Shown: piece after piece, positions 10,631 to 48,727 of the stretch
Position numbering within the stretch: position 1 is the stretch's first letter
Layout: each line of letters starts with the position of its first letter
NCBI GenBank assembly: GCA_010909165.1
Contig: MU008159.1
Span: 1,798,001-1,862,000, forward strand
DNA: 64,000 bases
From: Anthoceros angustus
Taxonomy: Eukaryota > Plantae > Anthocerotophyta
Reading direction: 5' to 3'
Notes under the pieces: model-generated
Databases searched by the model: none
What the model was told of the DNA's origin: nothing
The model's input: only the letters and a program-made list of their open reading frames with translations
Program-made: the position numbers and the translations under genes

Positions 10631-11275
10631 AGTATTGCTGAGACTCCTCATATTCGTGTGTTTTTTTGGTTTCACACGCTTTTGATTTGCTCGGAATGGC
10701 CAAAACCCTAATGAGAGAGAGTGGAAATCCCGGCTCCTATACTTTCGAATTGTATCTTTCAATCGTCCAGATACAAACAAATCGGGGTGAAGGCATGGTT
10801 CTTTCGTTCTTGCTCCTTCCCGAATGCAGTGAGCAGTGTCATTATGGATTAGGTGGTAGAACTGTGAAGAGGAAGAGGGGGAAAATCTTCTATTCAGGGA
10901 AGGCGGGGACGGCGGTTGTTTTTTTGGTTACATCGTGAAAGTGAGCGACGTAATGTAGAACAGGTAGCAGGATAGTGGATGATGGGAAGGGAAATAGGGT
11001 ATGACTTTGTATCAAGTGGCGGCGGCTCAGTTTTTGGGTTACCATGTGTGCTTCTTGTATGTTACAGCGTGAGGAGGTGAGTGAGAAAAGTGGAGAGGGC
11101 GGGTAAGGGGGTTTGAACTTTGATGCTTTTCCCCTCGTTGTTCAATCCACGAAAGCAATAATCCCCATGTGCTCCATGCTAAAAAGTTGACCTAAATGGT
11201 GCACATGCAAGCTTCTTGCACGGCTTTGAATTTGCAGGCCGTCAGCCCCTACCTGGCTCAGAAGGAGTCACCCTA

Positions 11276-21777: not shown

Positions 21778-22454
21778 TGTGGACAAGGGAAGAACGGTAG
21801 ACTCCCCCCCTTAGGAAGGTAATAGGAGTTTTTTTTGTTTTTTTAGTGTTTGGTGTGTGAAGAATAAGGTGGGGACAGGGAAAATAAGGCCGAACGGACC
21901 AGAGAGGAACGGATGGAGGGGTCCCTGCCGGACAACGTCAGGTACTCCGGACTGGGCGCCGGAGTAATTCGGGAGCCTACTAAGGTAAGTCCGACGGGCG
22001 GAATAACCAGGGGGCGAGCGTGAAGCGTAATTGGCAAGCGGGACACGGGGATGGTACTGAGTGGAGGACGGACATGTAACGGACTGGGACCGCAGAGTGT
22101 CAGCGGCCGCTATTGGCAGGTAACCACGACCCAAGGGCAGCGCCAAGAAGGCGGCGGGCGTGAAGTCGCGATTGATGCTGGCCGCGCATCGCGAGGCGAA
22201 CGCCTTCCAGCGGCGATTACGCTCCACACCCAGCACCGCGGAGAAGACTATCTTCCCAAACTACGCAGCGGCAGTTCTCTCAGTCTCTCGCGCTCCGGCA
22301 TCCCGCTCTCTGGCGCCTTCTCTTCCGAGACATGAGCGTAACTTCGGGCGGTCTGCAGTTCTGTCCGACGCGTCGACCTCGCCGGAGCTCAGGAGCGCCG
22401 CGACGAACAACACAGCTCACCCCTCCTCAACGACAGAAGCAGCGGCGTGCTTCC

Positions 22455-22758
22455 ATGGGGCCAAAGAAGGCGATGGAGTCCTAGGAACCGTGGTGGAACG
22501 CAACATTGTCACCAAGCTGTATCCGGACTTTGGTCCATGGCTGGAGGAGGCGGCGGAACTGGTGCAGGAGTGGCACCTCGACGTTTTCCAGGCCGTCTGG
22601 ACTTACGATAGCGTGGCCTTGGTCCGGGAGTATGCTCGGAAGATGCTGGCGGCGGCGAGCAAAACAGTCCGCTCGAAGAGCCTGAAGGAGGACCCGAGGC
22701 GATGGACAGTGGAGGTTCTCCGGGCGGTCTACAACCGCCCGGCAGAGGAGGTAGAAGG
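22455..22758 (+). pseudogene. 5' part of a TE accessory ORF, interrupted by the Sola2 element
   Basis: ...TVRSKSLKEDPRRWTVEVLRAVYNRPAEEVE continues in frame at 38138 as GVVPEPLKLRGKVEAARAALLRPGSQRSSNG once the element and one TSD are removed. Confidence 0.75.
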
Positions 22759-23472
22759 GGGTGCAAGCACGGTTAGGTAGACCACATTATGTGGGGACGG
22801 ACGCAACGTGGAAATATGTCCACATGTGGACATATTTACCTTCAAAAACTCTCCTCGCTAGAATAATGATCAAGTGATTCAAGTTTTTTCCCAAAACTAA
22901 GAGCATGGCAACAAGTCCACAGTAAAATGCCCAGATTTTAAGGATATGATTTTTGCATTTGGTATTTAATTATTTGATCATGGATGGACAAGTGAGCTTT
23001 GGATACAAAAAGTGAGCACAAGACACACAACCCAAGCTCATTTGAATTTCAAACACAAACCGTCAAGTGAACACAGAACACTAAAAGTGAGTCTTTGTCA
23101 CACTGAAGTTGGAACTTGTTCAAATTTCAAAGTTTGGAATAAGCGGGAATTTCAAAGTTGTACCCTGGCGCGAATTTCAAGAGCAGTCGTCAAGTGAACA
23201 TGGAACACTGAAAGTGAAGCATGGTCACAAACAAGTGTAAACTTGTTTGTATTTCAAAGTTTTGTCTAAGCGGATTTTCAAAAGATGGTAAGTACCCATG
23301 TTGGTGCGACTTGTCACCAATGAGAGCATAACCCGCCATCTTCACGCTGCGAGACCTTTCACCACTGCTTTGCGCTTGAGGCGCTCGGTGCGTGTGTGAA
23401 CCATGTGCCCGATCGTGAGCTGCGAGGGAGGAGAGGCGGGAAGGGAGCCCGTCCGGGCGAGCAAGGAATTGA

Positions 23473-26400
23473 ATGGCTCCAGCGCCTCCCTCTCCGGGTG
23501 CACTTAGGAAAGCAAAACACGCACTGAAGCGCCGGTGGAGGGAAAAGCAAATTCGAGTTGCATCTTTGCGTGTGGAAGATGGAGCATCTTTGTGCGTAGC
23601 GGATGTTAGGCAAGAGGCGGAGGCGGTCGCATGGAGGAGGATTGTCACGGTGATAATCATACGGCGGAGGGTGGGTGTGAGGCGGCTTCTCCGGATCAAG
23701 AACCCTCAATGAGTGAGGAGGGAACTAGTCTACGAGGGCAAACAGCACCAGGTCCTCTTTCATCCACAGAGCGGTCAAGGCGATTCTGCACGGCAAAGGG
23801 GCGGATCTCACCAGTCGTGATGGGGCCGTGATGCACAATGTGGGCGTGTTGCTCGAGAACTTGGCCACGTTTTCGGATGTAGAACTGCCCACTTCAATTC
23901 GATAGCAAGGCTAAGGTGTTAGATGCTTTTTCCAGCTTCGTGGCCTCAAGGAATTCTTCCTGCCGTTCTTGTAGGGGTGAAGGCTCGAAGCCACATCCTC
24001 GCTCCAAAACATCAGGCGGCCATGAAAAGCTGGAGTGTACAAGCGTCGATCACTTGAAGGCAAGACAAACCTTTATGAATATTGTGCTAACTAACGACGT
24101 GAGGCAAGCAACTGGAGCAGCTGCCTTGGGCCGAGTCCTTGGGGTCAGCAGGTGAGTTGTGGCACGCCATCTTCAAACCCGCGGCGATTTGCAAAGTGCA
24201 CCAGAGGAGGCGCGCTGGTGTGGGTGGGGACGGAAGGCTCGTTCCGATTGTTTGCCCCAAGGGGTTAAGGAAGCTGTTTTGCAATTTTGGGAGTCGGCGT
24301 CAAGGCCTTCCTCCAACTCCAAGGATGCGAGGCGGCAGCGGGTGGCTCCTCTTGTCTTCCGCACGCACATCATCCATTTCCTAGATACCTCTCAGGTGAT
24401 TCAGTTCACGCAATTTCTCTTTGCTGCTTCCACTGGCGGTGCGCACACTGCCACTGGTGGTGAGCGCGTCTCCTTGCCCAGTGCAGGCTAGTCTATGCTT
24501 GCAATGAACACTGCCACTAACCCTTTAACTTGTTTCAGCAAGCCCGTCGGGATCATCACTATATGTGATGACAGCGTGCGTCTTGCATATCCTCTGCATG
24601 TTCGAGTTTCCTCCTGTGGCTGCTGCCGCTTGACTCGCTTCATCTCTTTGCTTGCGCCATGCTTGCCACAGCTCTTGTTTAGTTGCTCTTGCTCTGGTCA
24701 TTTGCCGCTCGATCATTGCTCGGCTCCATGGTCATTTGCCTGTGCTCGAGAACTTGGCCACGTTTTCGGTTGTAGAACTGCCCACTTCAATTCTGATAGC
24801 AAGGCTAAGGTGTTAGATGCTTTTTCCAGGCTTCGTGGCCTCAAGGAATTCTTCCCTGCCGTTGCCGTAGGGGTGAAGGCTCAGGAAGCCACATCCCTCG
24901 CTTTCCACATCAGGCGGCCATGAAAAGCTGGAGTGTACAAGCGTCGATCACTTGAAGGCAAGACAAACCTTTATGAATATTGTGCTAACTAACGTGAGGC
25001 AAGCAAGCGGGCGCCTTGGGCCGAGTCCTTGGGGTCAGCGAGTTGTGGCACGCCATCTTCAAACCCAGCGATTTGCAAAGTGCACGAGGAGGCGCTACCG
25101 GTGTGGGTGGGGACGGAAGGCTCGTTCCGATTGTTTGCCCCAAGGGGTTAAGGAAGCTGTTTTGCAATTTTGGCAGTCGGCGTCAAGGCCTTCCTCCAAC
25201 TCCAAGGATGCGAGGCGGCAGTGGCTCCTCTTGTCTTCCGCATCATCCATTTCCTAGATACCTCTCGGTGATTCGGTTCACAATTTCTCTTTCGCTTTGT
25301 GGCACGCACCTTGGTGAGCGTCTCCTTGCCAGTGCAAGCTAGTCTATTCTTGCAATTGAACACGCCACTAACCCTTTAACTTGTTTCAACAAGCCGTCGG
25401 GATCATCACTATATGTGATAGCTGTAGCTTGCCGTGCTGCTTGTCCTGCATGTTCGAGTTTCCTCTGTGTGCCGCTTGACACCTTCACATCTCTTTGCTT
25501 GCGCCATGCTTGCCACAGCTCTTGTTTAGTTGCTCTTGCTCGGTCATTTGCCGGGCTCGATCATTTGCTCGCTCCATGGTCATTTGCCACAGCTATTGCT
25601 CATTTTCTCGGCTCCGGTCATTTGTACTCGCTCATTTGCTCGCTCCTTGTCATTTGCTCGCTCCTTGTCATTTGCTCGGCTCAGTCATTTGCAGCTATTG
25701 CTCATTTGCTCGCTCCTTCTCATTCGCTCGGCTCTGGTCGGGTTCCAGCTCTGCTCATTTGCCACAGCTCGATCATTGGCCTCCGCTCCTTTGCCATGGC
25801 TACTGATCATTTGCTCTGCGTGCAATGTTCATTTGCTGTAGCTCAGGTTCACTCGAGGATATACAAGGCTCACCTGCTTTGTGAGTGGGGCACTTCATGT
25901 GGCTCTGTGTCCTTTTGTGCAGACCGCTCCACTCTATCTACTTTGTTTGGTCACATCTTGGTGTCCCAGCTTTTAGAGGGAGATGTTCTGAGCATGCATT
26001 GTCGTGAGTGATGTGCAGACGGAGTTTTTTTTGCGCTTTCAAAAGGAGAATCCGGATATCAAGATTGGCCAACGAGCATTCGAGAAACTGAAGCCCTTCT
26101 TCATCAAATCCCTGCAAGAGAGAAATGTCTGTTGTTGCAGGTACCATGTCGAGATGGCATTTTTGAAAGACGCTGAATCTGCTACGCAGTACCGTATCAA
26201 AGGTGCACCTCGTGTGCACGTGTACCTGGGTGTGTGGAGAGGAACCCGAGGAGGGGACAAGTGCCACGCGATCGGAGATGTTTTCATCCGTCCAGAGATG
26301 GTGCACTCTTTTATGCCCTAGAGCACCGGATGAGGGTGGCATAGGCGAAAATGTTTGCTTGGTAAATGCGCTGTGGAGTTTCAAGCGGCCCTCATCCTAA

Positions 26401-27959
26401 GGAGGTTTCACAAGCATTTTTGCCGGAGATGAAGCTGAAGTGGCGGTGCTTCAAATATCAGAAGGTGGGAGTGAATGAGGACGGAACCTCCAAGTCCAGA
26501 ATAAAAGCTAGTTTATAGGGAAACCCATCCGTCGGCAATGATTGAATTTCTTAAGGATAAATTGACTACTTTCATTTCACATGACTACATCCAAAGATGG
26601 CAAGCCCTGGAGTTTCGGAAGTGCATTGATTGGTTTCCCGAGGATGTGATAGTTTCTATTATGGACTTTTCGCAGAACTATGCTTTTCAAGTTCAGAATG
26701 AGATACAATCAATGCACTGGCATAGTGATCAAGTTACTATTCTAGTTCATGTTACATATATGCGGATGGGGCCAGTGGTGGAGGAGGACCCCTGCTGTAA
26801 TGTTCAGAAGTTTTACCACTTTTACATTAGTGATGACATGCAGCATGACACTCTCTTTGTCCAGCATGCCCTTATGCTACATTGGGACTGGCTACTGTCA
26901 AATGGATACAAGAGTCCACGAGAGCATTGGATGTGGTCGGATGGTGCAGCTTCGCAGTTTAAGGCTTGCAGACCAAGCTATTTTGTGGCGAGGTACCCAA
27001 GTCTAAGGAGGATGCGAGAATCTTTGTGGAGCTATTTTGGGTCGAGCCACGGAAAGGGGAGCACGACGGGCCATATTAAAGAGGGCACTACGTCAAGAGT
27101 CACCTTCATCGACGAGGCTGCGAGCCGCGGATGTTGTCGACTTCTGCGGTCCAAGTATATCCAATGGGGCTGCATCCTCCTATGCAAGTGGAGAAAGGCA
27201 GGTGCAAAGGGTTTTTGGTTGGTGGGAAAGAATGAAGTCAACCGCAGTGGGGTGTGCACCAATCCGGGTTCTAAAGGCATGCACATATATGGTGACTCGT
27301 GGATGCAACCAACCCTCGGCTCAAGATGCGGCATCTTGCGTGTTTTTGTCTTTGTGTGCATGGGCGGTGACCATGGAGCATGTGAGGCAGTGCCCTATAG
27401 CATATGGCATTGATTACTCGAGGCGGACGGTAGAAGGGCGTTGGTGGTCGGACCGGACACGCACCATTGTCGCTACATGCGGTTGGTCCAGATGGGCCAC
27501 GATCCTCTGCTAATGGTGTTGCTAGTGAAGATGTCTCGAAATTGCACCTCTTGGAGCTTGGAGACAACTTTGTGGTGCGTCACGGATCCGAGGCGAAGGT
27601 TCAACTTTTTATTTGGCAAAGTGCCATTGCGTGCATGTGACCACGGAGCACATTACATCCAGGCGGACAAAATTTCCTCCAGGATAAGGTGGTTGTGGGC
27701 CGGACTACTCGGGTTGAGCCGGATGGTTGTGTGTACACTTTGGATCATGAGGTCTGGAGGTCACCCTTCTTTCATCCTACGTGGAGACTGCAAGTTCCCA
27801 CTTTTGGAACGCGTGGAAGGAGGCCGATTAGTGTATGTGCTTGACTCGGACACGGTCGAGTCCTTTAAGGAGCTTGTGAGGGAGGGAAACCAACCCATTT
27901 GTGTTTTCGTGTCGACTCTAAGGCCTCAATTGTACATATGCCAAACGAAATTGAAATGA
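23473..27959 (+). pseudogene. Sola2-like transposase, spliced (intron about 24396-26018), frameshifted
   Basis: RKARSDCL..VLQFW..SRPSSNSKD, HFLDTSQ|TEFF, IKIGQRAFEKLKPFF..RNVCCCRYH, DFSQNY..QNEIQSMHW..QVT, SDD..HD, WSDGAASQFK, WSYFGSSHGKG(E)HDG, C-terminal RHLACFC. Confidence 0.85.
25535..25850 (+). repeat. Degenerate ~18-20-bp repeat in the transposase intron
   Basis: catttgctcgctccttgt and variants. Confidence 0.8.
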
Positions 27960-28164
27960 CCTTGACGAACTTGTAAATACCATGGTGGTTGCTCAAGATG
28001 TGGCCATATTCACACTGTGATGACCCGCTCCACTCCGCTTGGGATCCGGAGCACTTTGCTTGACTTGCGACCTTGCGGGTGACAATGCCCAACTTAAGCG
28101 CCTTTTAAAACCCCATCTCGTGGAAGACCTTGGAAGAGCCAAAGATTGATGCAAGTGAGCCATG

Positions 28165-28320
28165 GCCACGGCGTCAGTGCGGTGTCGGTGCGATGGCGGT
28201 AGCGGTGTCGGTGCGATGGCGGCGGGTGTTCTGCGATGGCGGTAGCGGTGTTGTGCGATGGCGGCGGGTGTCGGTGCGATGGCGGTGCACGGGTGTCGGT
28301 GCGATGGCGGATGCAGATGG
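28165..28320 (+). repeat. GC-rich tandem repeat between the two convergent genes
   Basis: Core gtgtcggtgcgatggcg, about 6 copies. Confidence 0.85.
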
Positions 28321-29389
28321 TAGGCGGAGACCATTCATGGCTCGGGCGACCCTCTTGGGCAAGTGTCCGGAAGACTTGCGTAGTCATTTGGTGGTGATGC
28401 GGCAACCCGGATCCGGTATGGATGCGGAAAGGGTCGCCACGGCCAGCGAGGCGTCGGTGATCACGTGCGTCGGTGGCCCACCAGAGGATGAGGCTGAGGA
28501 TACACAATCAGTGAAGTCAAGCTAGTCTCTAAGAAGGAACCAAGAAAAGGGCCATCTAGTGTTTGGGAGAAGTTCGTTATTCCCTGGCCCATGTTTGTTC
28601 TTGCGTGTTTAGGTGTGGTGTGTGTTGGAAGGAAGGCTCTCCCTGTGTACATGCAGGAGGCGCTATTGTTTCTCAATTGAAGCACTTCAAAATTGTCCAG
28701 CATTCTATCAAGTATGTCAAGCGGTGTCTTTTCTAGTCTCTCCATTGTCCGGTTGTCTAGCCACCTCTGATTCAGCGTTTGACATGTGCCTCTAGGGCTT
28801 CCTCTAGCGTGGCAGCAAGGGCTTACCCAATACTTGGGCTTGTCCTTCTTGTTGTGGGGATCCACTGTCACCTCCGGCATCTCGACTTTGGCTGCAGACG
28901 CATGCCTGAGCGAGACAGTTGCCCAAGCTTCCCTTGTTCGGGTATAGCCCGGCCCTACTTCCACATAATAATTACCTTCAACAACCTCGGCGCCTTTGCG
29001 AATTGGGCGACCCTTCCAAAACTTGTCTTCATGCTGCCTCGAGCTGCGAACACCCTCGACACACCGAGGAGGTAGAATTTAACGTTCTGCATTGCACGCT
29101 ACGTACCATATAGTTGTCTCCAGGCTCCAACTCTCGCACTCCCGAGGACAAGTGACTAGTCTTCGGTCTTGATGAATGCTTCGGTTTGGTCGTCTTTGGA
29201 GCCTTCCGCTTCGTGCCTCTACTCCCAGAGCGGGTCCCCATCCCCTCGGCAGCCTCACTATTATCATGCTGCACCAAACCTGTGCCCACCCCACTCACAT
29301 TTCCAGCCTCACTATTACCATCTTGCACCAAACCTGCCCACCCCACTCACATTTCCAGCCTCAGACACCTCCACCCCAGCCTGCTCCAC

Positions 29390-29835
29390 CTGACATGTGT
29401 CCTTGTCCACTTCAGGTCCATCATCCTTCGCCTCATGAGATGTGTCCTCATTCTCCACCTCAGGTGTGTCCCTATCCACCTCAAGTGGGGCCTTCTCAAC
29501 CTCAAGTGTGTCATTCTCCACCTCATGTGTGGCCTTTGTCTGGTCAGGTGTGGCCTTCTCTACCTGATGCCCCTCCATGTCCACCTCAAGCGTGTCCTTG
29601 TCCACCTCTAGTGTGGCCTTCTCAACCTGAGCTATGTCATTCTCCACCTCATGTGTGGCACTTTTCTGCCCAGGTGTGGCCTTCACCTCGTAGCTCCTGT
29701 CCACCTCATGTGTCCTTGTCCACCTCAAATGTGGCATTCTCCACTATAAGTGTGGCCTTTTCCGCTCGGATGTGGCCTTCTTCACCTCATGCGGCTCATT
29801 CTCCACCTCCGCATTGGGCGTCGCTTCCTCAGGTG
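29390..29835 (-). repeat. 21-bp tandem repeat encoding acidic heptapeptides (EVDKDTH/EVEKATL)
   Basis: ccacctcatgtgtccttgt-like units, about 20 copies. Confidence 0.9.
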
Positions 29836-31274
29836 TGGGCGTTGTTGCAAAGTTGTCCAAAACTTCTGCATCATGTAAAAAGTCATCAAGTGCTTGGGGT
29901 TGGATGTCGTCCACTAAGCCGCCAACCACGTCATCACCTCCATGAACCTCCTGATCTGCCTCCCCCCACACTGCACCTCGTTCCACGCCCACTGGGTCTT
30001 CTGTGATCCCGCCGTGGGTGTCATCAACTGCAGCAATTCCATTGTTGCAACCTTCTCGAGGCCTACACCGATTGACCCCTTGCATTGGAGTCGTTTTTCA
30101 CCGAGGCGGGTCCAAGCACCCCTCGTGCCACGACCGCACGCCAAAATCGAGCCAGAAGAGCCGCCGGTGGCAAGCAGTGGCCGTGTTCAATGGGAACACG
30201 GTGGCACTTGTCACCGGCGGCTTTTCATAGCAAGGCTGTAAAAACGCGATGATAGCATTAGACTTTGGAGGAAAGCAACACGGTGCAAAGGAGAACCCTA
30301 TTCCTCGGCACACACCCTCTACACACACCTGGAGATGCTGCTGCCCGCATGTCCTGGCGGTGGCTACGGCGGATCTTCTCAAGGCGGGACAGCAATGCAT
30401 CCGGATCCTTTACCAGCTCAAGGTACTCAGATTTCCACTCCTTGAGTATTCCACCTGCGCCTGCATCTGTTCCTGCGGAAGGTCCCAACCTTTTGCGACA
30501 TACCACCGGGTGTCCACATCCATGCTGCAGTCTTCCAGGGCACATGTCTTGTTGGTCTGCAAATGGGAAAAAGGCAAAATTCATGGTACATATGCCGCAC
30601 GAGAGCAAAACCACTCATTGCAGCCAAACCACCTGCAATGACACGCACTCAATGAGAAACAAGGTGGACACCAGTTCCAGACAAGAAAACAGATCCGCAC
30701 AGTACACCGAAAGAATACCTTGCGCATATAGGGCAAGCATTCACGAATTGTTGGCCCGGTCGCTCCAATGGCGCTGGAAGGAAGTTGGTGCGACCGGGCC
30801 TCCCCCACTTCAACATCCATGACGCAAGAGACTTGAGGATGTTGAACATCCTCCTTTCGGTCAACAACGCAAGCCTTGAAGCTCATGTTGGGCGGCGGTC
30901 CTCTGCTAACTCCTCAACCCAGGTACAGGGTTTTCTCCAGAGTGTACAAGGCTTGAAGCTGGCCCGAAAGGTGGCTGATTAGGGATCTGTGCCCTTGAAT
31001 GTCCTCAAAAGTCTCGTCCTCGTCAATGCTCTTCTGCACCATCTCCATTTCTTGAGAACACTTGCGGATGTCGAACGCCACCTCCCAAGTCTCTTTTCAC
31101 CGTCAATGCTTGCTTCACCTCCTTTGCGGTGGCATCCACCTTGTCAAGTTGCATTCACATCCGCCAACTCCCAGACTGGATCGGTGGTCGGCGAGGATGG
31201 TAGCCACCTTGCTCTTCCTTCGCGTCTGCCCTCACACATCATCACCGAGTTACTCATCCACCCTTCCCGGTGGA

Positions 31275-31790
31275 ACATTATTGCATGCAAAGTGGCATTG
31301 TGCCACCGTAGAACCAATATGCGAGCCTAGGAAAAGTGGCCTTGGGCACGAAGTGGAAGCAGACGAGTAAATGACTAGGGTGCAACGCACATGTGGCAGA
31401 GTGGACCAGAATTGCAGGCAAAGTGGCATTGTGCACAGTGGAACAAATGTGCGGAAAAATGACATTGGGCATGTGAAGTGGAAGATGCATACGAGCAAAT
31501 GAGGGTGCAACGCACATGTGGCGAGTGGACCGATGCAAAGTGGCATTGTGCACACAGGTGGAACAAATGAGCAGGAAAAATGACATTGGGCACAGGAAGT
31601 GGAAGACAGACACATAGCAAATGATCAGGGTGCAACGCACATGTGGCAGAGTGGACCAGAATTGCAAGCAAAGTGGCCTTGTACACATAGGTGGAACAAA
31701 ATGCAGATAAACTGACATTGGACACACCAAGCGGATGAGAAACAAACAGCACATGACTAGGGTGCGACGCACATGTCGCTCAACAACAGT
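31275..31790. repeat. ~110-120-bp tandem repeat, probably intronic; repeated again at 33230-33700
   Basis: Recurring aaagtggcattgtgcac..gtggaacaaatg..aaaaatgacattgggca..aagtggaag..gggtgcaacgcacatgtggc. Confidence 0.85.
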
Positions 31791-34700
31791 CGAGTTCGGC
31801 AGATAAGCTAGTGCATGGTGCACTTCACATGAGCCTACACTATGTCAAAATAGGTTGACTGACAAGGAGGGCCATCCTGGGTGCTCCTTAGAGGATACTA
31901 GGTAGTCTAGAGGGACTTAGCGACCAGGCATGCGGAACAGAAGATAAATCAGGCATGTTAGACAACCTTGGAGAGACAAAATAAAAAACAAGCACATCCT
32001 ACCATGAGGTGGCTGCTGCTCATGTCCTGTGGGCTTCCCTACAATGAGTAGGGGCTCTTCCTCCTTGACTCCTGCAGCCTTCACCGCCTCTGCCCGCTTT
32101 CCCTCTCGTATTTCTCGTTTCTTATTCCTTCCGGATTGGGTCTTCTCGTGAAACACCCTCCAGTTCACCTCAACGCCAGCAAGTTTCTCCAGCGCAATCC
32201 CAAGGGCCATAAGCCTAGGGATCCGCTTCTCCCCCAAGCTGGGCCTCAACTCGTACATGCCATAAACAAGAACATCAATTTCCCTCCATTCTTCTTGAGG
32301 CGGTTCCCAACCATGCCCTCGTTAAAAGGGGGCCAAAAGCTTCTCCACCTCCTCATTCCCCAACATTTCCCTCGGTCCATTTGAGCCCCAAGTCTTTGAC
32401 ATCCACCCCGGCTAGCGGATCGCCATCGCCGCCCTCCATGTCCATCTTGCCATGGGCTCTTTCGCTTCCGCCCATATTCCCTCAAGCGCTCTCTTTGCTG
32501 CTGCGGCGCTCCTTCCCTTTCCGGCTCCGCTTTTCCGCTGCCCTACTTTTGGATTCCATGGATCTGCCACTTCGGCGCTTGGGCACCTCAGGTGAGGTCG
32601 CTTCCACCTCACCTCCAGTCTCGTCACTCACCAGATGAGTGCCCAGAGCTCCCCTCCTGAGTGTGGTCTTCCACATCTCTGGCGTCCTCGCTTTCTTCAA
32701 GCTCCGGACGTCTGCCCTTAGATGAATTCCCTCTGCACACACAACCCACATCAAGGACCACTGTTAAGTTACATGGAAAGCACGGTTAGGCAGACAGCGA
32801 GCACCATCCACATCTGCAGCATCAAAGCACTCGAGCCGCCTCGGAGCCACTTCTTGCCGCGGCCAAGTCCCCATCGCGACGGCCCCTTGTCCTCCGCCAT
32901 CCAGCTCTCGCCGTGCGAGGCCCATGTCCTAGCCCCAAACCACTGGGCTCGAGGAAGGGCTCCACAAGCCGGGTCTCGGGACATGAGCTTAGAGGTGCCT
33001 CCCACCTTGGGCGTGAGGCCTTGCACTTGGATCACCACCTCACCCAATCGCACCTAAACTTTCCAAACATGCAATCATACAGGGCATCCACCTTGTCAAG
33101 TTGCATTCACATCCGCCAACTCCCAGACACGGACTGTGGTCGAGGATGGTAGCCACCTTGCTCTTCCTTCGCGTGCTGCCCTCACCGATCATCACCGAAG
33201 TTACTCATCCACCCTTCCAAAGGAACATTATTGCATGCAAAGTGGCATTGTGCCACCGTAGAACCAATATGCGAGCCTAGGAAAAGTGGCCTTGGGCATG
33301 AAGTGGAAGCAGACAGAGTAAATGACGGTGCAACGACATGTGGCAGTGGACAATTGCATGCAAGTGGCATTGTGCACATAAATGTGAAAAATGACATTGG
33401 GCATGAAGTGGAAGATGACACATAGCAAATGACGAGGGTGCAATGCACATGTGGCGAGTGGACAGTGCAAAGTGGCATTGTGCACACAGTGGAACAAATG
33501 AGCAGGAAAAATGACATTGGGCAGGAAGTGGAAGATGACACATAGCAATGATCGTGGTGCAACGCATGTGGCGAGTGGACCGAATTGCGTGCAAAGTGGC
33601 CTTGTACACATAGGTGGAACAAAGCTGCAGATAAGACATTGGACACACCAAGCGGATGAGAAACAAGCACATGACTAGGGTGCGACGCACATGTCGCTCA
33701 ACAACCAGTGTCCGAGTTCATCAGATAAGCTAGTGCATGGTGCACTTCACATGAGCCTACACTATGTCAAAAGGTTGACGACAAGGAGGGCACTGGTGCT
33801 CCTTAGAGGATACTAGGTAGTCTAGAGGACTTAGCGACTGCGGAATGGGGAAGATAAATGCATGTTAGACAACCTTGGAGAGACAAAATAAAAACAAGCA
33901 CATCCTACCATGAGGTGGTCATGTCCTGGGCTTCCCTACAATGAGTAGGGGCTCTTCCTCCTTGACTCGCCTTCACCGCCCGCCCGCTTTTCCTCTCGTA
34001 TTTCTTCTTATTCCTTCCGGATTGGGTCTTCGTGAAACACCCTCCGATTCACCTCAACGCCAAGAAGTTTCTCCAGCAATCCCAAGGGCCATAAGCCTAG
34101 GGATCCGCTTCTCCCAAGCTGGGCCTCAACTCGTACATGCCATAAACAAGAACATCAATTTCCCTCCATTCTTCTTGAGGCGCAGCCTCCCCAACCATGC
34201 CCTCGTTAAACTGGGGCCAAAAGCTTCCACCTCCTCATTCCCCAACATTTCCCCAGAGCCCCAAGTCTTTGACATCCACACAACGGATGCGCCATCGCCC
34301 GCCCATGTCCATCTTGCCATGGGCTCTTCGCCCATATTCCTCCAAGCGCTCTCTGCCGCCGCTTTGCCGCTCCTTCCTTCCGGCCCGCTTTCCCTACTTT
34401 TGGATTCCATGGATCTACTTGGCGCTTGGGCACCTGTGAGGTCGCCCACCTCACCTCCGCCTCGCCACTGCAGATGAGTGCCCAGGCTCCCCTCCCGAGT
34501 GTGGTCTTCCACATCTTTGGCGCCTCGCTTTCAAGCTCCGGACGCCCGCCTAGATGAATTCCTCCGCACACACAACCCACATCAAGGACCACTGTTAAGT
34601 TACATGGAAAGCACGGTTAGGCGTGACAATGAGCACCATCCACATCTGCAGCATCAAAGCACTCGAGCCTCGAGCTGCCACCGCCGAGCTGGCCAAGTCC

Positions 34701-37700
34701 CCATCGCGACGGCCCGCCTTGTCCTCCGCCATCCGCAGCCTGCACAGGCCCATGTCCTAGCCCCAAACCACGGCTGGGCTCGAGGAAGGGCTCCACAAGC
34801 CGGGTCTCGGGACATGAGCTTAGAGGTGCCTCCCACCTTGGGCGTAGAGGCCTTGCACTTGACGATCACCACCTCACCCAATCGCACCTAAACTTTCCAA
34901 ACATGCAATCATACCGGAGGCCGTCCATCCGGCTTCCGAGCTCCTAGGTGGGCGTTTCCTACAGATGTGCACGATCTTTGTCGAGGCGAGGTCATGGCGG
35001 CAAGCGCAAGCCCCGAACCCGGCAATTGCGGCTGGGCGACCTACTCGCAGATTGGTGGCTCGAACTTGGCTGTCCTCCCGGCGGCTGGCCCGATCTCCCT
35101 TCCGCCCTGCAGCCTCTAACCGTGGGGACCTCATTGTGGATGAGTGGGCACCCTCCTCCCTTCCTCCTGAACACTCCAAATGGCGATGGTGGCCGCGCCT
35201 CAGAGCTCCTGCCAAGTCGAACACCGCGGCTTCACGCCCAGTGCTTTTCCCAAGTTCCCAGACATGACTAGGTGCGACGCACATGTCGCTCAACAACCAG
35301 TGTCCGAGATCGAGGATAAGCTAGTGCATGGTGCACTTCACATGAGCCTACACTATGTCAAAAGGTTGACTGACAAGGAGGGCCATCCTGGTGCTCCTTA
35401 GAGGATACTAGGTAGTCTAGAGGACTTAGCGACTGTGCATGCGGAGCAGAAGATAAATGTGCATGTTAGACAACCTTGAGAGAGACAAAATAAAAACAAG
35501 CACATCCTACCATGAGGTGGCTGCTGCTCATGTCTGTGGGCTTCCCTACAATGAGTAGGGGCTCTTCCTCCTTGACTCGCAGCCTTCACCGCCTCGCCCG
35601 CTTTTCCTCTCAGATTTCGCTTATTCCTTCCGGATTGGGTCTTCTCGTGAAACACCCTCCAGTTCACCTCAACGCCAAGAAGTTTCTCCAAGCGCAATCC
35701 CAAGGGCCATAAGCCTAGGGATCCGCTTCTCCCAAGCTGGGCCTCAACTCGTACATGCCATAAACAAGAACATCAATTTCCCTCCATTCTTCTTGAGGCG
35801 GTTCCCGCCAACCATGCCCTCGTTAAACTGGGGCCAAAAGCTTCTCCACCTCCTCATTCCCCAACATTTCCTCACCATTTAGCCCCAAGTCTTTGACATC
35901 CACCCCAAAGACAACGGATGCGCCATCGCCCGCCTCCATGTCCATCTTGCCATGGGCTCTTCGCCGCCATATTCCTCCAAGCGCTCTTTGCCGCCGCTGG
36001 CCCTTCCCTTCCGGCCCGCTTTTCACCGCCCTACTTTTGGATTCCATGGATCGCCACTTGGCGCTTGGGCACCTGTGAGGTCGCTTCCACCTCACCTCCG
36101 CCTCGCCACTGCAGATGAGTGCCCAGCTCCCCTCCCGAGTGTGGTCTTCCACATCTGGCGCCTCGCTTTCAAGCTCCGGACGCCCTTAGATGAATTCCTC
36201 CGCACACACAACCCACATCAAGGACCACTGTTACATGGAAAGCACGGTTAGGCGGTGAGCACCATCCACATCTGCAGCATCAAAGCACTCAGCACCGCCT
36301 CGAGCTGCCACTGGCCGCTGGCCAAGTCCCCATCGCGACGGCCCGCCTTGTCCTCCGCCATCCGCAGCCTCGCCAGGCAACGAGGCCCATGTCCTAGCCC
36401 CAAACCACGGCTGGGCTCGAGGAGGGCTCCACAAGCCGGGTCTCGGGACATGAGCTTAGAGGTGCCTCCCACCTTGGGCGTGAGGCCTTGCACTTGGATC
36501 ACCACCTCACCCAATCGCACCTAAACTTTCCAAACATGCAATCATACAGGGCATCCACGGCTTCAGCTCCTAGGTGGGCGTTTCCTACAGATGTGCACGA
36601 TCTTTGTCGAGGCGAGGTCATGGCGGCCGCCCGAACCCGGCAATTGCGGCTGGGCGACCTACTCGCAGATTGGTGGCTCGAACTTGGCTGTCCTCCCGGC
36701 GGCTGGCCCGATCTCCCTTCCGCCCTGCAGCCTTCACCGCCTCCCCGCTTCCCTCCTCGTATTTCGCTTATTCCTTCCGGATTGGGTCTTCTCGTGAAAC
36801 ACCCTCCAGTTCACCTCAACGCCAAGAAGTTTCTCGCAATCCCAAGGGCCATAAGCCTAGGGATCCGCTTCTCCCCAAGTCGGGCCTCAACTCGTACATG
36901 CCATAAACAAGAACATCAATTTCCCTCCATTCTTCTTGAGGCGCAGTTCCCGCCAACCATGCCCCTCAAAACTGGGGCCAAAAGCTTCCACCTCCTCATT
37001 CCCCAACATTTCCCTCCCATTTGAGCCCCAAGTCTTTGACATCCACCCCAAGACAACGGATGCCGCCATCACCGCCTCCATGTCCATCTTGCCATGGGCT
37101 CTTCGCCGCCATATTCCTCCAAGCGCCTTTGCTGCGCCGCGCCCTTCCCTTCCGGCCCGCTTTTCCGCCCTACTTTTGGATTCCATGGATCGCCACTTGG
37201 CTTGGGCACCTGTGTGAGGTCGCCCACCTCACCTCCGCCTCGCCACTGCAGATGAGTGCCCAGAGCTCCCCTCCCGAGTGTGGTCTTCCACATCTTTGGC
37301 GCCCTTTCAAGCTCCGGACGCCCGCCTTAGATGAATTCCTCCGCACACAACCCACATCAAGGACCACTGCGGTTACATGGAAAGCCTAGCGTATGAGCAC
37401 CATCCACATCTGCAGCATCAAAGCACTGAGACCGCCGAGCTGGCCATCGCCGCCGAGCCAAGTCCCCATCGCGACGGCCCGCCTTGTCCTCCGCCATCCG
37501 CAGCCGTGCAACGAGGCCCATGTCCTAGCCCCAAACCACTGGCTCGAGGAGGGCTCCACAAGCCGGGTCTCGGGACATGAGCTTAGAGGTGCCTCCCACC
37601 TTGGGCGTAAGAGGCCTTGCACTTGACGATCACCACCTCACCCAATCGCACCTAAACTTTCCAAACATGCAATCATACTGAGGCCATCCCGGCTTCCGAG

Positions 37701-38137
37701 CTCCTAGGTTTCTCAAGGCACAGACAGTGTCATGGCGAAACGCAAGCCCCGAACCCCAAGAATTGCCCAGCGACCTCGCACCTCGCAGATTGGTGGCTCG
37801 AACTTGGCTGTCCTCCGCGCTGGCCCGATCTCCCTTCCGCCCGGCGCCTCTAACCGTGGGGACCTCATTGTGGATGAGTGGGCACCCTCCTCCCTTCCTC
37901 CTGAACACTCCAAATGGCGATGGTGGCCGCGCCTCAGAGCTCCTGCCAAGTCGAAACACGGCTTCACGCCCAGTGCTTTTCCCAAGTTCCCAGACATGAC
38001 ATGTTCACGCTCCAAATTTGACTTAACTTCAAACTATATAAATATTGGATAATCGAAACTCGCCGTATATGCAGCACATAGTGCACATTTGCATATGTCA
38101 CAAAATGTGGTATACCTAACCGTGCCTACACCCAAGG

Positions 38138-41100
38138 CGTAGTGCCAGAACCTCTAAAGTTGAGGGGCAAAGTGGAAGCAGCCAGGGCTGCCCTGTTGAG
38201 ACCAGGGTCTCAGAGGTCCTCCAACGGGTGATGTCCACCTCCTGGACCGACGAGGAGAGCAAGTACAAGATAATTGTCCATCGGAACATGCTCACCAAGG
38301 CTGATCACTTAGGTGACAACCTTTTGGTGTTTTTGCATGCCCTTATGAGGGGCAAGCGAGCGGACTGGGGGCAGATCATTTACGCCCGCATCGCGCAGGA
38401 GGCGCGGAAATTGCGTAGCGAATGGCCTCCGCCCTTGGCCATGTCCCCATTCATCGTGCATGTTTGGGGGCACCTTAACCTCCTGAGGGAGGGAGAGGAG
38501 GAGCGAGCTCTCCGGAAAGGGCGGGTCACATTCCCAGAAGCGAAGCGTGAGGAGGTAGCACAGGACCTGGGAAGTCGGCCAGGCAAGAAGCGTTGGACGT
38601 AGGAGGAGGAGGACTGGGAAGGCATTCCGGACTCCATTCGCCTGGAACGGACCCCTTCCCCTCCAAGGGAAATTTGGGAAGTAATTCCCGCTTCCCTCCT
38701 CCTCGTGCCACTGGCAGGGGTCACCTCCGTGGCCGCAACGACAGCGGTCCAAGCGCCTTTGCTGCGCCGCGCCCTTCCCTTCCGGCCCGCTTTTCCGCCC
38801 TACTTTTGGATTCCATGGATCGCCACTTGGCTTGGGCACCTGTGTGAGGTCGCCCACCTCACCTCCGCCTCGCCACTGCAGATGAGTGCCCAGAGCTCCC
38901 CTCCCGAGTGTGGTCTTCCACATCTTTGGCGCCCTTTCAAGCTCCGGACGCCCGCCTTAGATGAATTCCTCCGCACACAACCCACATCAAGGACCACTGT
39001 TACATGGAAAGCCTAGCGTATGAGCACCATCCACATCTGCAGCATCAAAGCACTGAGACCGCCGAGCTGGCCATCGCCGCCGAGCCAAGTCCCCATCGCG
39101 ACGGCCCGCCTTGTCCTCCGCCATCCGCAGCCGTGCAACGAGGCCCATGTCCTAGCCCCAAACCACTGGCTCGAGGAGGGCTCCACAAGCCGGGTCTCGG
39201 GACATGAGCTTAGAGGTGCCTCCCACCTTGGGCGTAAGAGGCCTTGCACTTGACGATCACCACCTCACCCAATCGCACCTAAACTTTCCAAACATGCAAT
39301 CATACTGAGGCCATCCCGGCTTCCGAGCTCCTAGGTTTCTCAAGGCACAGACAGTGTCATGGCGAAACGCAAGCCCCGAACCCCAAGAATTGCCCAGCGA
39401 CCTCGCACCTCGCAGATTGGTGGCTCGAACTTGGCTGTCCTCCGCGCTGGCCCGATCTCCCTTCCGCCCGGCGCCTCTAACCGTGGGGACCTCATTGTGG
39501 ATGAGTGGGCACCCTCCTCCCTTCCTCTGAACACTCCAAATGGCGATGGTGGCAAGCCGCGACGCCCGAGAGCTCAAGTCGAAACCGCCACGGCTTCACG
39601 CCCGAGGCACTTTCTTCCCAAGTTCATTGACATGACATGTTCACGCTCCAAATTTGACTTAACTTCAAACTATATAAATATTGGATAATCGAAACTCAGA
39701 TATGCGCACATAGTGCACATTTGCATATGTCACAAAATGTGGTATACCTAACGTTTACACCCAACAAGGCGAGTGCCGGAACCTCTAAAGTTGAGGGGCA
39801 AAGTGGAGCGGCTGTACGCCCTGTTGAGACCGAGGTCCTCCAACGCAGTGGGCGATGTCGGACCTCCTGGACCGACGGGTGAGAGCAGTGGCCAAGATAA
39901 TTGTCCACTGGAACATGCTCACCAAGGCTGATCACTTAGGTGACAACCTTTTGGTGTTTTTGCATGCCCTTATGAGGGGCAAGCGAGCGGACTGGGGGCA
40001 GATCATTTACGCCCGCATCGCGCAGGAGGCGCGGAAATTGCGTAGCGAATGGCCTCCGCCCTTGGCCATGTCCCCATTCATCGCATGTTTGGGGCACCTT
40101 AACCTCCGAGGGAGGGAGAGGAGGAGCGAGCTCTCGGAAAGGGCGGGTCACATTCCAGAGGCGTGAGGAGGTAGCAGGGACACAGGAAGTCGGCAAGAAG
40201 CGTTGGACGTAGGAGGAGGAGGGCGGGAAGGCATTAGGACTCCATCACTTTGAAGCGGACCCTTCCTCAAGGGAAATTTGGGAAGTAATTCCCGCTTCCC
40301 TCCTCGTGCCACTCAACGGGTCACCTCCGTGGCCGCAACGACAGTCCAAGTCGGCGCCCGGCACACGGAGGACACAAGGCCCGTTCCGGCCCCGCCCGTC
40401 GAGCCTCGACGGACTGGGAGGGAGGCCAAGAACAAATGGAAGGATCCGGACTCCAACGCTCCGGTGACGGTGCCTCGTGCCCGCCGATGGAGTGGCAGAA
40501 GAGGTCGCTATGCACGGTGCGGAGGGACTCGGCCTGTGGCGCCGGAGGACACTGGCAGCAACCTCATCCGGAGCCGGTCCTCTCTCCTACAAGGAGAGGA
40601 AAGAGGGCCAGCTCGAGGACCCCATCACCACCGCCGGATCCAAAGAGGAGAAGGGTGGAGAAGGAGTTGGCCGCAAAGAGGGCCAAGGAGGTTGAAGGAC
40701 CTACTCCGGACGGTCAGGACTTGGGGGTCCTGATTGGGTCCGGAGTACCTAACCCGGAGCTGCTCCGGAGTGCAGTCTGGCGGGCCTTAGCGGACCGAGA
40801 AATGCCCGTAGCCCCAGCAGGGTACTTAGGCACATCGCCACCGGGCGCCGTGGAGGAAACACGGCGAGTATTGGCTGCCGTCATGGACGGTATGCTATGG
40901 GGTCTCTGCGGGACAGCAGAGAAGGCTTAGGAGGTGGAGGCCACCCGGCGGAGGATGGTGGAACTTCAGGGCCAAACGGAGGCCGCCCAAGCGGCCAGGA
41001 GGAAGGCGGAGTCCCTCGCCCGAATCGAGGAAGAGAAGCGGCGGGCGGCAGAGACAGCGGCAAGATCCACCCAGCAGGACCGGACGAGGGTCCTTCAATT

Positions 41101-46981: not shown

Positions 46982-48727
46982 AACAGCGTCTGTTTAGAAA
47001 GGGGTTTCTCCTGTCAAAAGGGGTTTTGGAAAAAATCCCAACCCTATTTCGCCGGAAACTGAAGTTGCTTTGGTTTTTGTTGGTTTTTGTAGGTGTTCAT
47101 CCATCGGTTCCGGGCATTCTCGGCTCCGGCACCACTTCCTGTCGAGTCATTTACACCGCATTGGCGCCTTGTACTCAGGTTCATGGCGATTTAGTCGGTG
47201 TGATGAAGGGCTAGTGACCTCATTGTTCCATAATTTCGTCATGTCCGTAGTTTCTGCATTTTGTGTGGTTTTGTATGTTTTGTATACCGGGGGCCTAGGC
47301 GCGCATAAGTGCGCGTCTAAACAACGCTATCAAACTTGTGCACGACTGCAAAAAGAACGCGAAAAATGATCTTCTAATGGGAAAACATGTCCTTTTGGAG
47401 GTCTGAGGATGTTCCGGAACTCCCGACAAAATAACAGGTAGCAGACATCGGCAGAGGTTCACCTAGACCGCTCTCATATATCTATCCTATGCCCTAATGC
47501 GATGAAGAGCACCCTATCCCCTTTTTATCCTTTACGGTGTTTCCGTCTCTTTCGGCAGTGATCTAGTACCGAGTTATCATCAAACATGCCAGGGGCCCGG
47601 TGGGTGAACAAGTGCATGTACCGAGGGGCAAGGGGCCCGGTGCGCACTTGTGCGCGCACCGAGGCAGGAGGCCAGTGCGCGCACCGAGGCAGGAGGCCAG
47701 TGCGCACTTGTGCGCGCACCGAGGCAGGAGGCCAGTGCGCGCACTGGGGCAAGGGGCCCGGTGCGCACTTGTGCGCGCACCATGGGGCAAGGAGGCCCAG
47801 GTGCACGCACAAGTGCACGCAACCAAGGTCAAGAAGGGCTTAGAAGCATGAATCCATATGGTTCATGCCTCCTAGTGCATTCCCAGACGGTTCATCCAAA
47901 GAAAAAGAGCAAAAAGTCTAAAAAACCCTTAAAACCCCTAAAAAAATCACAAAAAAGTCCAGTTTTTTTAGGCAAGTGCGCGCACTTGCCCTAAAATTTT
48001 GACAATTTTTTGAATTATTTTGTATTTGTTTTAAAGGGTTCCTTTCGACGTTTTCAACCTTTTTTGTGCACCTCCCTAATGTGGATATGTTCTTATCTTT
48101 ACTTAACCCTCATCTTTTCTCTAGTGGTTAAAATTTTGAACTAGTAGTGAGAACCTTTTGCATCTTTTGAATCTTGAGGCGTTTGGCGTGGGCCCGACTC
48201 AAGTGCGAGACCATGCCACTCTCATTCTCTTGCATGTGGATCAAGAACATTAGGTCAACGAAGATATTATTGTCCCAATGTCTAAGAAACAAAGTCTGTA
48301 AAATTCTCGAGGCGAGAGTATAGTCTTAGGATTGAGTGGTATGAATGAAAGGTTGGTGCGCAAACAAGTTTGCGCACAGTCTAACAAGCCCTAAAAACTC
48401 TAAAGCGTTTGTATCGTCCAACACGGCAATGATTGCGGATGTTGGAGATTGTTTAGATGTAAGTGCGCGCATAAGTTTTGTGTGTCATCGATTTGAAAGA
48501 AAAAGCCGAGCGAGAATGGGACTTTAGGTTTTGCCACGTACTTGCAATCTACAATCTCAAATAACGTGTATCAAAACAATTATTCAAAAGGTTGCGGTGA
48601 CATGTCCGAGAGAAATACCAAAACGGCTGATTATAGTGCGGATTTTTTCAAGTGCAAAAAGGGGTCCGGCCACGTCCGTGTGCAAAAAAGGGTTTCAGGA
48701 GAAACCCCTTTCTAAACAGACGCTGTT
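46982..48727. mobile_element. Non-autonomous TIR DNA element (1746 bp) nested in the copia-2 integrase
   Basis: Perfect 32-bp TIR AACAGCGTCTGTTTAGAAAGGGGTTTCTCCTG at 46982-47013 and 48696-48727. TTTT on both sides. Excision restores ACT TCA ACT TTT CTA CTG AAC (TSTFLLN). Confidence 0.93.
47590..47822. repeat. GC-rich tandem, partly palindromic repeats inside the TIR element
   Basis: gtgcgcacttgtgcgcgcaccgaggcaggaggcca units. Confidence 0.9.

Follow-up and report, generated by a model that had tools for sequence, protein, structure and literature searches.

A Sola2-like transposon with a convergent RING-H2 gene in the genome of Anthoceros angustus

The 64,000-nt stretch of the Anthoceros angustus genome analyzed here (assembly GCA_010909165.1, contig MU008159.1, positions 1,798,001 to 1,862,000 of the forward strand; hereafter, the window) probably contains a Sola2-type cut-and-paste transposon in a single copy, inserted within another repeat. 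Its real size is put at about 10 kb, and it holds two convergent genes between 35-bp terminal inverted repeats (TIRs), a transposase gene on the plus strand and an accessory RING gene, referred to as ORF2 (second open reading frame), on the minus strand. Homologues of both genes were found together in many related loci, and the range of the family is from a charophyte to moss-like sequences. The analysis covered 87 related loci and, in addition, the contigs L088-L095, which were found from ORF2 proteins. Coordinates of the features are given in Table 1.

Ends, transposase and classification of the element

The left arm (22759-22793) and the right arm (38099-38133) form TIRs of 35 nt that are complementary at 31 of 35 positions (89%). 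Direct reading of the letters shows that both termini open with GGG, at 22759 on the left and at 38133 on the right, and that the tetranucleotide AAGG is present identically at 22755-22758 and 38134-38137 as a target site duplication (TSD). The boundaries read …GTAG AAGG / GGGTGCAAGCACGGTTAGGTAGACCACATTATGTG… on the left and …CACAAAATGTGGTATACCTAACCGTGCCTACACCC / AAGG CGTAG… on the right, the slash marking the limit of the element. The arms are the sole long-range inverted pair reported by the repeat finder within 22-39 kb, and a 29-nt TIR pattern searched with up to three mismatches matched only the two ends in the 64 kb, with a chance expectation of 0. These data show that the inverted repeats, the terminal GGG and the duplicated AAGG, all claimed in an earlier note on this sequence, are real. 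The note had also called the ends exact; TIRs and TSD are indeed present, but the right end is duplicated in tandem together with its TSD and 600 bp of flank.

A further claim was that removal of the element restores an interrupted open reading frame (ORF) in frame, and this holds only in part. After in silico removal of 22759-38137, the ORF of the upstream flank crosses the junction and continues for 31 codons, but then meets a stop, and the long ORF of the downstream flank sits in a different frame. The frame change coincides with a stretch in which insertions and deletions (indels) distinguish the two copies of the flank in the assembly, and the behavior of the flank ORF would fit an element that had inserted within a different repeat. 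Since the sequence at the insertion site is coding-like on the plus strand (22160-22758 and 38228-38602) and the right flank has a weak match (E-value 0.09) to the Pfam family Transposase_32 ("putative plant transposon protein"), such nesting is probable.

The three-aspartate (DDD) transposase predicted on the plus strand was recovered by homologues, alignment and frame-by-frame matches. ORF 26538-27413 has 64 unnamed homologues with approximately 50% identity, one of them from Klebsormidium nitens. In an alignment of 24 sequences D43 (DFSQNY) is nearly invariant, D99/D100 and D135 (WSDGAASQFK) are invariant, and the block SGHGKGEHDGAGA (the HGKGEHDG block) is conserved. The likely triad, assigned by position and not from structure, consists of the aspartates at 26664-26666 (DFSQNY), 26940-26942 (WSDGAASQFK) and 27065-27067 (KGEHDG); as assembled, the last of them is in another frame, the KGEHDG codons (27053-27070) being out of frame with the core. 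The earlier note had described the gene as spliced. The gap between the N-terminal and the main coding blocks is intron-like, as in the relative L095, where the transposase is split into a 319-residue ORF and a 627-residue ORF approximately 1.3 kb apart; because of this split, the window gene, too, likely has at least one intron. The core (25998-27065), on the other hand, aligns by tblastn in one frame to unspliced relatives, with in-frame stops, and the C-terminal half is frame-broken rather than spliced: it matches relatives piecewise in all three frames up to approximately 27900, so that at least five frame changes are needed. In ESM-Atlas, the clusters nearest to the L095 transposase consist of hypothetical proteins from cnidarians, molluscs and streptophytes.

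Sola2 elements have 4-bp TSDs and GRG termini and are best known from animals and protists; they were reportedly described by Bao, Jurka, Kapitonov and Jurka in 2009. The GGG at both ends of the window element and of the L095 element fits the 5'-GRG termini of Sola2 as given in the earlier note. Five motifs of the window family (DF.EN; Q…(S/T)IL; HF..SD…H; WSDGA..FK; HGK…D) occur in the same order in the published Sola2_DFa-2 and Sola2_PPa-1, as compared by eye and unscored; their counterparts there are LMDFKEN, Q…SILGMVIY, HFDVFSD…H…V.H, FWSDGAKHFKS and YHGKSDVD (PMC3627910, additional file 3). The 3' end of DFa-2 is GAG in reverse complement (PMC3627910), that is, G-purine-G as in the window. 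The collinear motifs, the 4-bp TSD and the termini starting with G support the classification of the element as a Sola2-type DDD cut-and-paste transposon and speak against the transposase grouping outside Sola, with the limit that the motifs were read by eye, with no E-value or tree against Sola1, Sola2 and Sola3 proteins. This limit favors the alternative that the element belongs to Sola1, to Sola3 or to an unnamed DDD lineage merely resembling Sola; so do the lack of any Pfam family reaching its cut-off for the transposase, among the ORF pieces of the window and of its relatives, and the length of the TIRs (35 bp, compared to 12-22 bp in dictyostelid Sola2; PMC3627910). In view of the shared motif order and of the ends, we consider this alternative unlikely. 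Apart from the TIR length, the element differs from the published Sola2 elements in its streptophyte, rather than amoebozoan or animal, host and in the AAGG duplication, which is not AT-rich, while the order of the acidic motifs, the TSD length, the G termini and the size of 10-15 kb are common to them.

The second gene in related loci and in the window

The first link to a RING gene came from a search of the relatives' ORFs against the window, in which a minus-strand ORF of L074, itself having sub-threshold matches to Pfam RING models, matched window positions 30670-30449. Homologues of this ORF are present in 12 more loci, every one on the strand opposite to the transposase. By a profile search, the RING exon lies opposite the transposase in 15 of the 20 related loci that extend at least 8 kb beyond the transposase (11 of 16 after merging near-identical contigs), at a distance of 4-9.5 kb from it. 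The reciprocal search agrees: seven of the eight contigs found via ORF2 proteins (L089-L095, but not L088) carry a convergent transposase, and in these seven it is 51-54% identical to the window core. An exhaustive search with the RING-exon profile yielded 520 cluster representatives at E ≤ 1e-3. In the transposase tree, RING-bearing loci are scattered over a 42-row clade that is sister to the 14-row clade of the window.

Some members of the ORF2 family are long ORFs of 500-717 residues, whose products combine a coiled coil and a RING with a domain that is conserved at the N-terminus. In intact relatives the product has 500-630 residues, with an N-terminal domain (N-domain) of approximately 130 residues, the coiled coil, and a RING-H2 of the C3H2C3 type. 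The N-domain is present also in L072, L030/31, L028 and L032, the ORF2 of L028 additionally having acidic or basic low-complexity regions. The ratio of nonsynonymous to synonymous substitution rates (dN/dS) of ORF2 is 0.26 for the pair L092/L093 and 0.19 for L094/L095, indicating purifying selection on the gene in these relatives; the same analysis of relatives gave 0.03-0.18 for the transposase.

The best preserved copy is in L095, where 28-bp perfect inverted repeats (244-271 and 10650-10677) delimit a 10.4-kb element (L095:244-10677) enclosing both genes in open frames, a 567-residue ORF2 and the two transposase ORFs mentioned above. By its sequence, this looks like an intact relative of the window element. 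Aligned after a 4-nt flank, all four ends of the two elements agree at 19 of the first 26 TIR positions, by which we judge the L095 inverted repeat to be homologous to the window TIR. A TIR search in six AT-rich relatives gave noise only.

The position of the RING gene opposite the transposase in both directions of search, together with its low dN/dS, identifies ORF2 as a dedicated accessory gene, a conserved feature of the family and not a one-off capture. In plants, DNA transposons such as Pack-MULEs often pick up pieces of host genes, and the window ORF2 is fragmentary and has no Pfam match; both points would suit a captured piece of a host RING gene, or an unrelated nested insertion, with no role for the element. 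The earlier note had raised the possibility of such a one-off insertion. It is already contradicted by the relatives, where a gene for an N-domain/coiled-coil/RING protein faces the transposase in most of the long loci, evolves under constraint and, in L095, lies inside the perfect inverted repeat; we thus hold it to be very improbable indeed, and the plant Sola2 family with its own accessory gene, which the note had proposed, gains support.

As for the fold, eight zinc ligands of the form C-x2-C…C-x-H-x2-H-x2-C…C-x(n)-C can be recognized, each Cys or His being present in 53-62 of 63 family sequences; the last ligand pair is spaced x4, not x2. An AlphaFold model of the RING of one relative (P0162:380-490) has a predicted local distance difference test score (pLDDT) of 81. 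A Foldseek search of PDB with this model gave RING or RING-type E3 domains as nearly all of the top 50 matches and as all of the top 10; the probability reaches 1.00, but the best E-value is only 6e-3. RNF165 is among the matches, with a root-mean-square deviation of 1.9 A over 47 residues. At the level of the predicted model, the RING cross-brace fold is shown for this relative.

In the window itself, a profile built from the RING exons of 10 relatives matches the RING region with 31.9 bits (E 1.8e-7) when an X is placed at each of the three single-base breaks of the frame. A full-length profile of six ORF2 proteins has three window matches that are collinear on the minus strand, namely, the end of the N-domain with EVNWRVF (31920-32321, i-Evalue 2.7e-4), a weak match at 30917-31096, and the RING (30413-30648). 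Duplicated N-domain copies at 35401-35772 and 36737-36856 likewise match this profile. The matched pieces (30413-32321) lie inside the TIRs (22759-38133), the RING exon is approximately 3.3 kb from the transposase, and the presence of a second gene on the minus strand, convergent with the transposase, is thus borne out. The zinc ligands of the window copy are distributed over three frames. Direct comparisons recovered little of this gene: tblastn of the window ORFs against the first 7 and then 87 related loci found transposase matches only, a word search with 30261-30614 (minus strand) found no match, Pfam had no usable match for more than 40 ORF pieces from the two genes, and tblastn of the long ORF2 proteins against the window yielded one weak match. 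The flank ORF with the Transposase_32 match was considered as a possible relative of the ORF2 N-domain, and comparison showed the two to be unrelated.

Several results weigh against the reading as a whole. First, the RING exon is missing in five of the 20 long loci, and the transposases most similar to that of the window (49-57% identity) are on contigs too short to include ORF2, as are the members of its own clade. Second, in one transposase sub-lineage (48-51% identical to the window core) the convergent position is occupied, without a RING exon, by a gene of the Pre-SET/SET histone-methyltransferase type, the Pre-SET match in L004 having an E-value of 1.3e-14. Third, the ORF2 matches in the window are short, and the frame path through the RING was picked after the alignment with L074, so that its E-value of 1.8e-7 is optimistic. 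Fourth, as with the transposase, no Pfam family reaches the cut-off for the ORF2 pieces, and in the family the Pfam RING models score at best 16-22 bits against cut-offs of 21-30, short of the gathering score. Finally, no 4-bp TSD was seen at the ends of the L095 repeat.

Two low-complexity features accompany the gene. In intact relatives, ORF2 and the transposase are separated by a conserved ORF on the ORF2 strand that is acidic and K/R-rich and has 218-264 residues; its dN/dS is 0.34 and 0.28, and it could be either a third gene or the last exon of ORF2. At the matching position of the window (29451-29809) there are acidic 21-bp repeats. Between two of the matched ORF2 pieces, probably in an intron, sits an array of 132-bp tandem repeats containing the motif AGGGTGCAACGCACATGT, which resembles the terminal GGGTGCAAGCAC and has two further copies in the duplicate block 33435-33694. 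By this resemblance, the AGGGTGCAACGCACATGT copies may be internal transposase-binding sites, and we list them as candidates. Another candidate, CCACATGTGG, was rejected as a repeated binding site, since it occurs only once.

Possible roles of the second gene and known two-gene elements

The transposase would cut the element out at its GGG termini and insert it with a 4-bp staggered cut of the target. The ORF2 product would probably act as a dimeric E3 ubiquitin ligase, in which the N-domain would select the substrate. Our preferred guess, put forward tentatively, is that host chromatin or silencing proteins are its targets and that the element is kept expressed in this way. The N-domain model has a pLDDT of 84 and no convincing match (best E-value 2.1 with Foldseek in PDB, best template modeling score 0.34 in ESM-Atlas, best Z-score 3.1 in the wide VIA-align search); as the domain has no structural match, the guess about the substrate lacks direct support, which counts against it.

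A role of ORF2 as a transposition cofactor, binding the subterminal repeats or the transposase, with the RING serving in transpososome assembly, nuclear import or turnover, much as with the Myb-like protein of Harbinger or the RING of RAG1, is in our view somewhat less likely, and it has several points in its favor. The gene accompanies the transposase over a deep divergence, TIR-like motifs are repeated inside the element, and a RING is fused to the Transib-derived recombinase in RAG1. The RAG1 parallel concerns the arrangement: in both cases a DDE/DDD recombinase has a RING E3 module associated with it, but in RAG1 the module is part of the same polypeptide, while here it is encoded by a separate convergent gene. 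Against a cofactor, no DNA-binding domain was recognized in ORF2 by Pfam or structure comparisons, and chromatin enzymes occupy the same position elsewhere, the Pre-SET/SET gene in a sister lineage and a ParB-methyltransferase gene in Sola1 (PMC12477816).

These observations led us to a broader and speculative suggestion, which we think could be right but would not expect to be: a streptophyte-wide Sola2 lineage may have a convergent "effector slot" filled by varying chromatin modules, mostly by a RING-H2 ligase with a novel targeting domain and at least once by a Pre-SET/SET protein. If so, the elements would themselves supply the enzymes by which silencing by the host is rewritten or evaded, in parallel to the ParB-methyltransferase genes of Sola1.

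The earlier note had stated that Sola2 elements are usually described with a transposase only, which overlooks two published cases. First, in the Sola2-Fanzor1 chimeric elements of Dictyostelium fasciculatum and Polysphondylium pallidum a second gene is known in Sola2 itself (PMC3627910). Like the window element, they combine a Sola2 transposase and a large second gene within one TIR pair; in their case the second gene encodes a TnpB-like Fanzor1 nuclease, as opposed to the N-domain/coiled-coil/RING-H2 protein here. Second, Sola1-1_Ec32 of Ectocarpus has a ParB-like/DNA-methyltransferase gene on the opposite strand, similar genes occur in green and red algae, and the authors propose that this accessory gene modifies the chromatin or DNA of the element itself (PMC12477816). 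This, too, is a giant element of the Sola superfamily with an accessory gene opposite the transposase, but it belongs to the Sola1 group and its accessory gene has other domain content. No TnpB/RuvC, ParB or DNA-methyltransferase Pfam family was found in the ORF2 pieces or in the full-length relatives. Two-gene Sola elements are therefore already known, and a RING partner was not found described in the literature searched; searches for Sola in bryophytes returned nothing relevant.

Among plant TIR elements, dedicated second genes are kept beside the transposase in MuDR (mudrA/mudrB), PIF/Harbinger (Myb-like ORF), CACTA (TNPA/TNPD) and VANDAL21 (VANC). These belong to other superfamilies, and the roles of their partners in DNA binding or anti-silencing serve as analogies only; to our knowledge, none of the partners is a RING protein. 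Cut-and-paste transposons with a second gene offer the best handles on the dealings of transposons with host control, as exemplified by MURB, TNPA, the Harbinger Myb protein and VANC. The very large family described here retains a gene of the RING ubiquitin-ligase type whose product also has a domain of unknown fold. Should silencing or chromatin factors of the host be the targets of the RING protein, the result would be transposon counter-defense by ubiquitination, a strategy well known in viruses and for which we found no description in plant DNA transposons in the literature searched. The idea can be tested directly in intact relatives, among which L095 would be a suitable reference copy for experiments.

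Tandem copies, frameshifts and size of the element

Both genes are frameshifted as assembled, and comparison of the window with itself revealed tandem copies at 456-5691, 23850-25588, 31131-40344, 47825-51044 and 51885-53451. In the third of these regions the pairs overlap in a chain: 31131-33080 with 33083-34914, 33669-35122 with 35262-36739, 35579-36739 with 36727-37856, and 37118-38744 with 38748-40344. In the last pair, the duplication takes in the right TIR with its AAGG and 600 bp of flank, and an exact copy of the inner 22 nt of this TIR is present at 39731-39752. The first, fourth and fifth regions are unrelated to the Sola2-like element and have the same pattern of indel-rich copies (90-97% identity), so that the tandem stutter looks like a property of the assembly.

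The differences between the copies comprise 41-92 gap events compared to 20-56 substitutions; transitions are about as frequent as transversions, almost every difference has a neighboring one no more than 5 nt away, and the clusters of differences are separated by perfect runs of up to 528 bp. Because of this excess of indels, balance of substitutions, clustering and long perfect runs, the differences are a signature of consensus error and not of divergence, and the frameshifts and tandem copies in the window are most likely assembly errors. The 4 mismatches in 35 TIR positions imply that the copy is not brand new, and the tandem copies are just 86-93% alike, as one would expect if they and the frameshifts were genuine and the window held an old, dead copy with local duplications and a true size of 15.4 kb. 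We regard this as quite improbable, considering the nature of the differences, the same stutter in unrelated parts of the window, and the state of the RING exon, which has lost three single bases within 60 nt and yet has its residues conserved.

When the chain of overlaps is followed, the part from 31131 to the right end shrinks to approximately 2.4 kb, and 846 bp are removed at 24743-25588. Collapsing in this way gives 9.96 kb, compared to 15.4 kb as assembled, so the real size is about 10 kb, as the earlier note had estimated.

Table 1. Features of the Sola2-type element in the window and of convergent genes in related loci.
Feature	Coordinates	Strand	Evidence or remark
Left TSD, AAGG	22755..22758	.	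direct reading; same as at 38134-38137
Left TIR, starts GGGTGCAAGCACGG	22759..22793	+	repeat finder and TIR pattern search
Transposase, N-terminal coding block	24015..24488	+	tblastn with upstream ORFs of relatives L001 and L003; 319-aa ORF of L095 (24051-24398, E 2e-7)
Tandem repeat of 23850-24740	24743..25588	.	self-comparison; 88% identity, mostly indel differences; probably assembly stutter
Transposase, main coding block	25992..27959	+	64 homologues, alignment, tblastn, frame-by-frame matches; likely triad in this block; C-terminal half frameshifted at least 5 times
Probable ORF2 tail: acidic 7-residue (21-bp) repeats and K/R-rich stretch	29032..30097	-	repeats and translations; placed by likeness to low-complexity regions of relatives
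ORF2 RING-H2 exon, three single-base frame breaks	30413..30673	-	L074 match; RING-exon profile; full ORF2 profile positions 453-498
132-bp tandem repeats with TIR-like motif AGGGTGCAACGCACATGT, 4 copies (31377-31776)	31270..31776	.	repeat finder and motif search
ORF2 N-terminal-domain piece (…MALGIALEKLAGVEVNWRVFHEKTQ…)	31920..32321	-	full-length ORF2 profile positions 139-185, i-Evalue 2.7e-4
Chained overlapping copies of 31131-33080 onward	33083..37856	.	self-comparison; 86-91% identity, indels dominate; adds approximately 4.6 kb
Right TIR	38099..38133	-	direct reading, repeat finder, TIR pattern search
Right TSD, AAGG	38134..38137	.	direct reading
Tandem repeat of 37118-38744, with garbled second right TIR, AAGG and flank	38748..40344	.	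self-comparison; outside the element proper
Conserved low-complexity ORF of relatives	L092:3862-4518; L093:2980-3747; L094:3690-4427; L095:3194-3988	ORF2 strand	dN/dS approximately 0.3
Pre-SET/SET-type gene of relatives	L002:17787-18670; L003:13340-13878; L004:6217-7032; L005:5605-5730	-	downstream of the transposase

For the reading of this assembly in general, indel-ridden stutters of this kind enlarge elements and disrupt reading frames.

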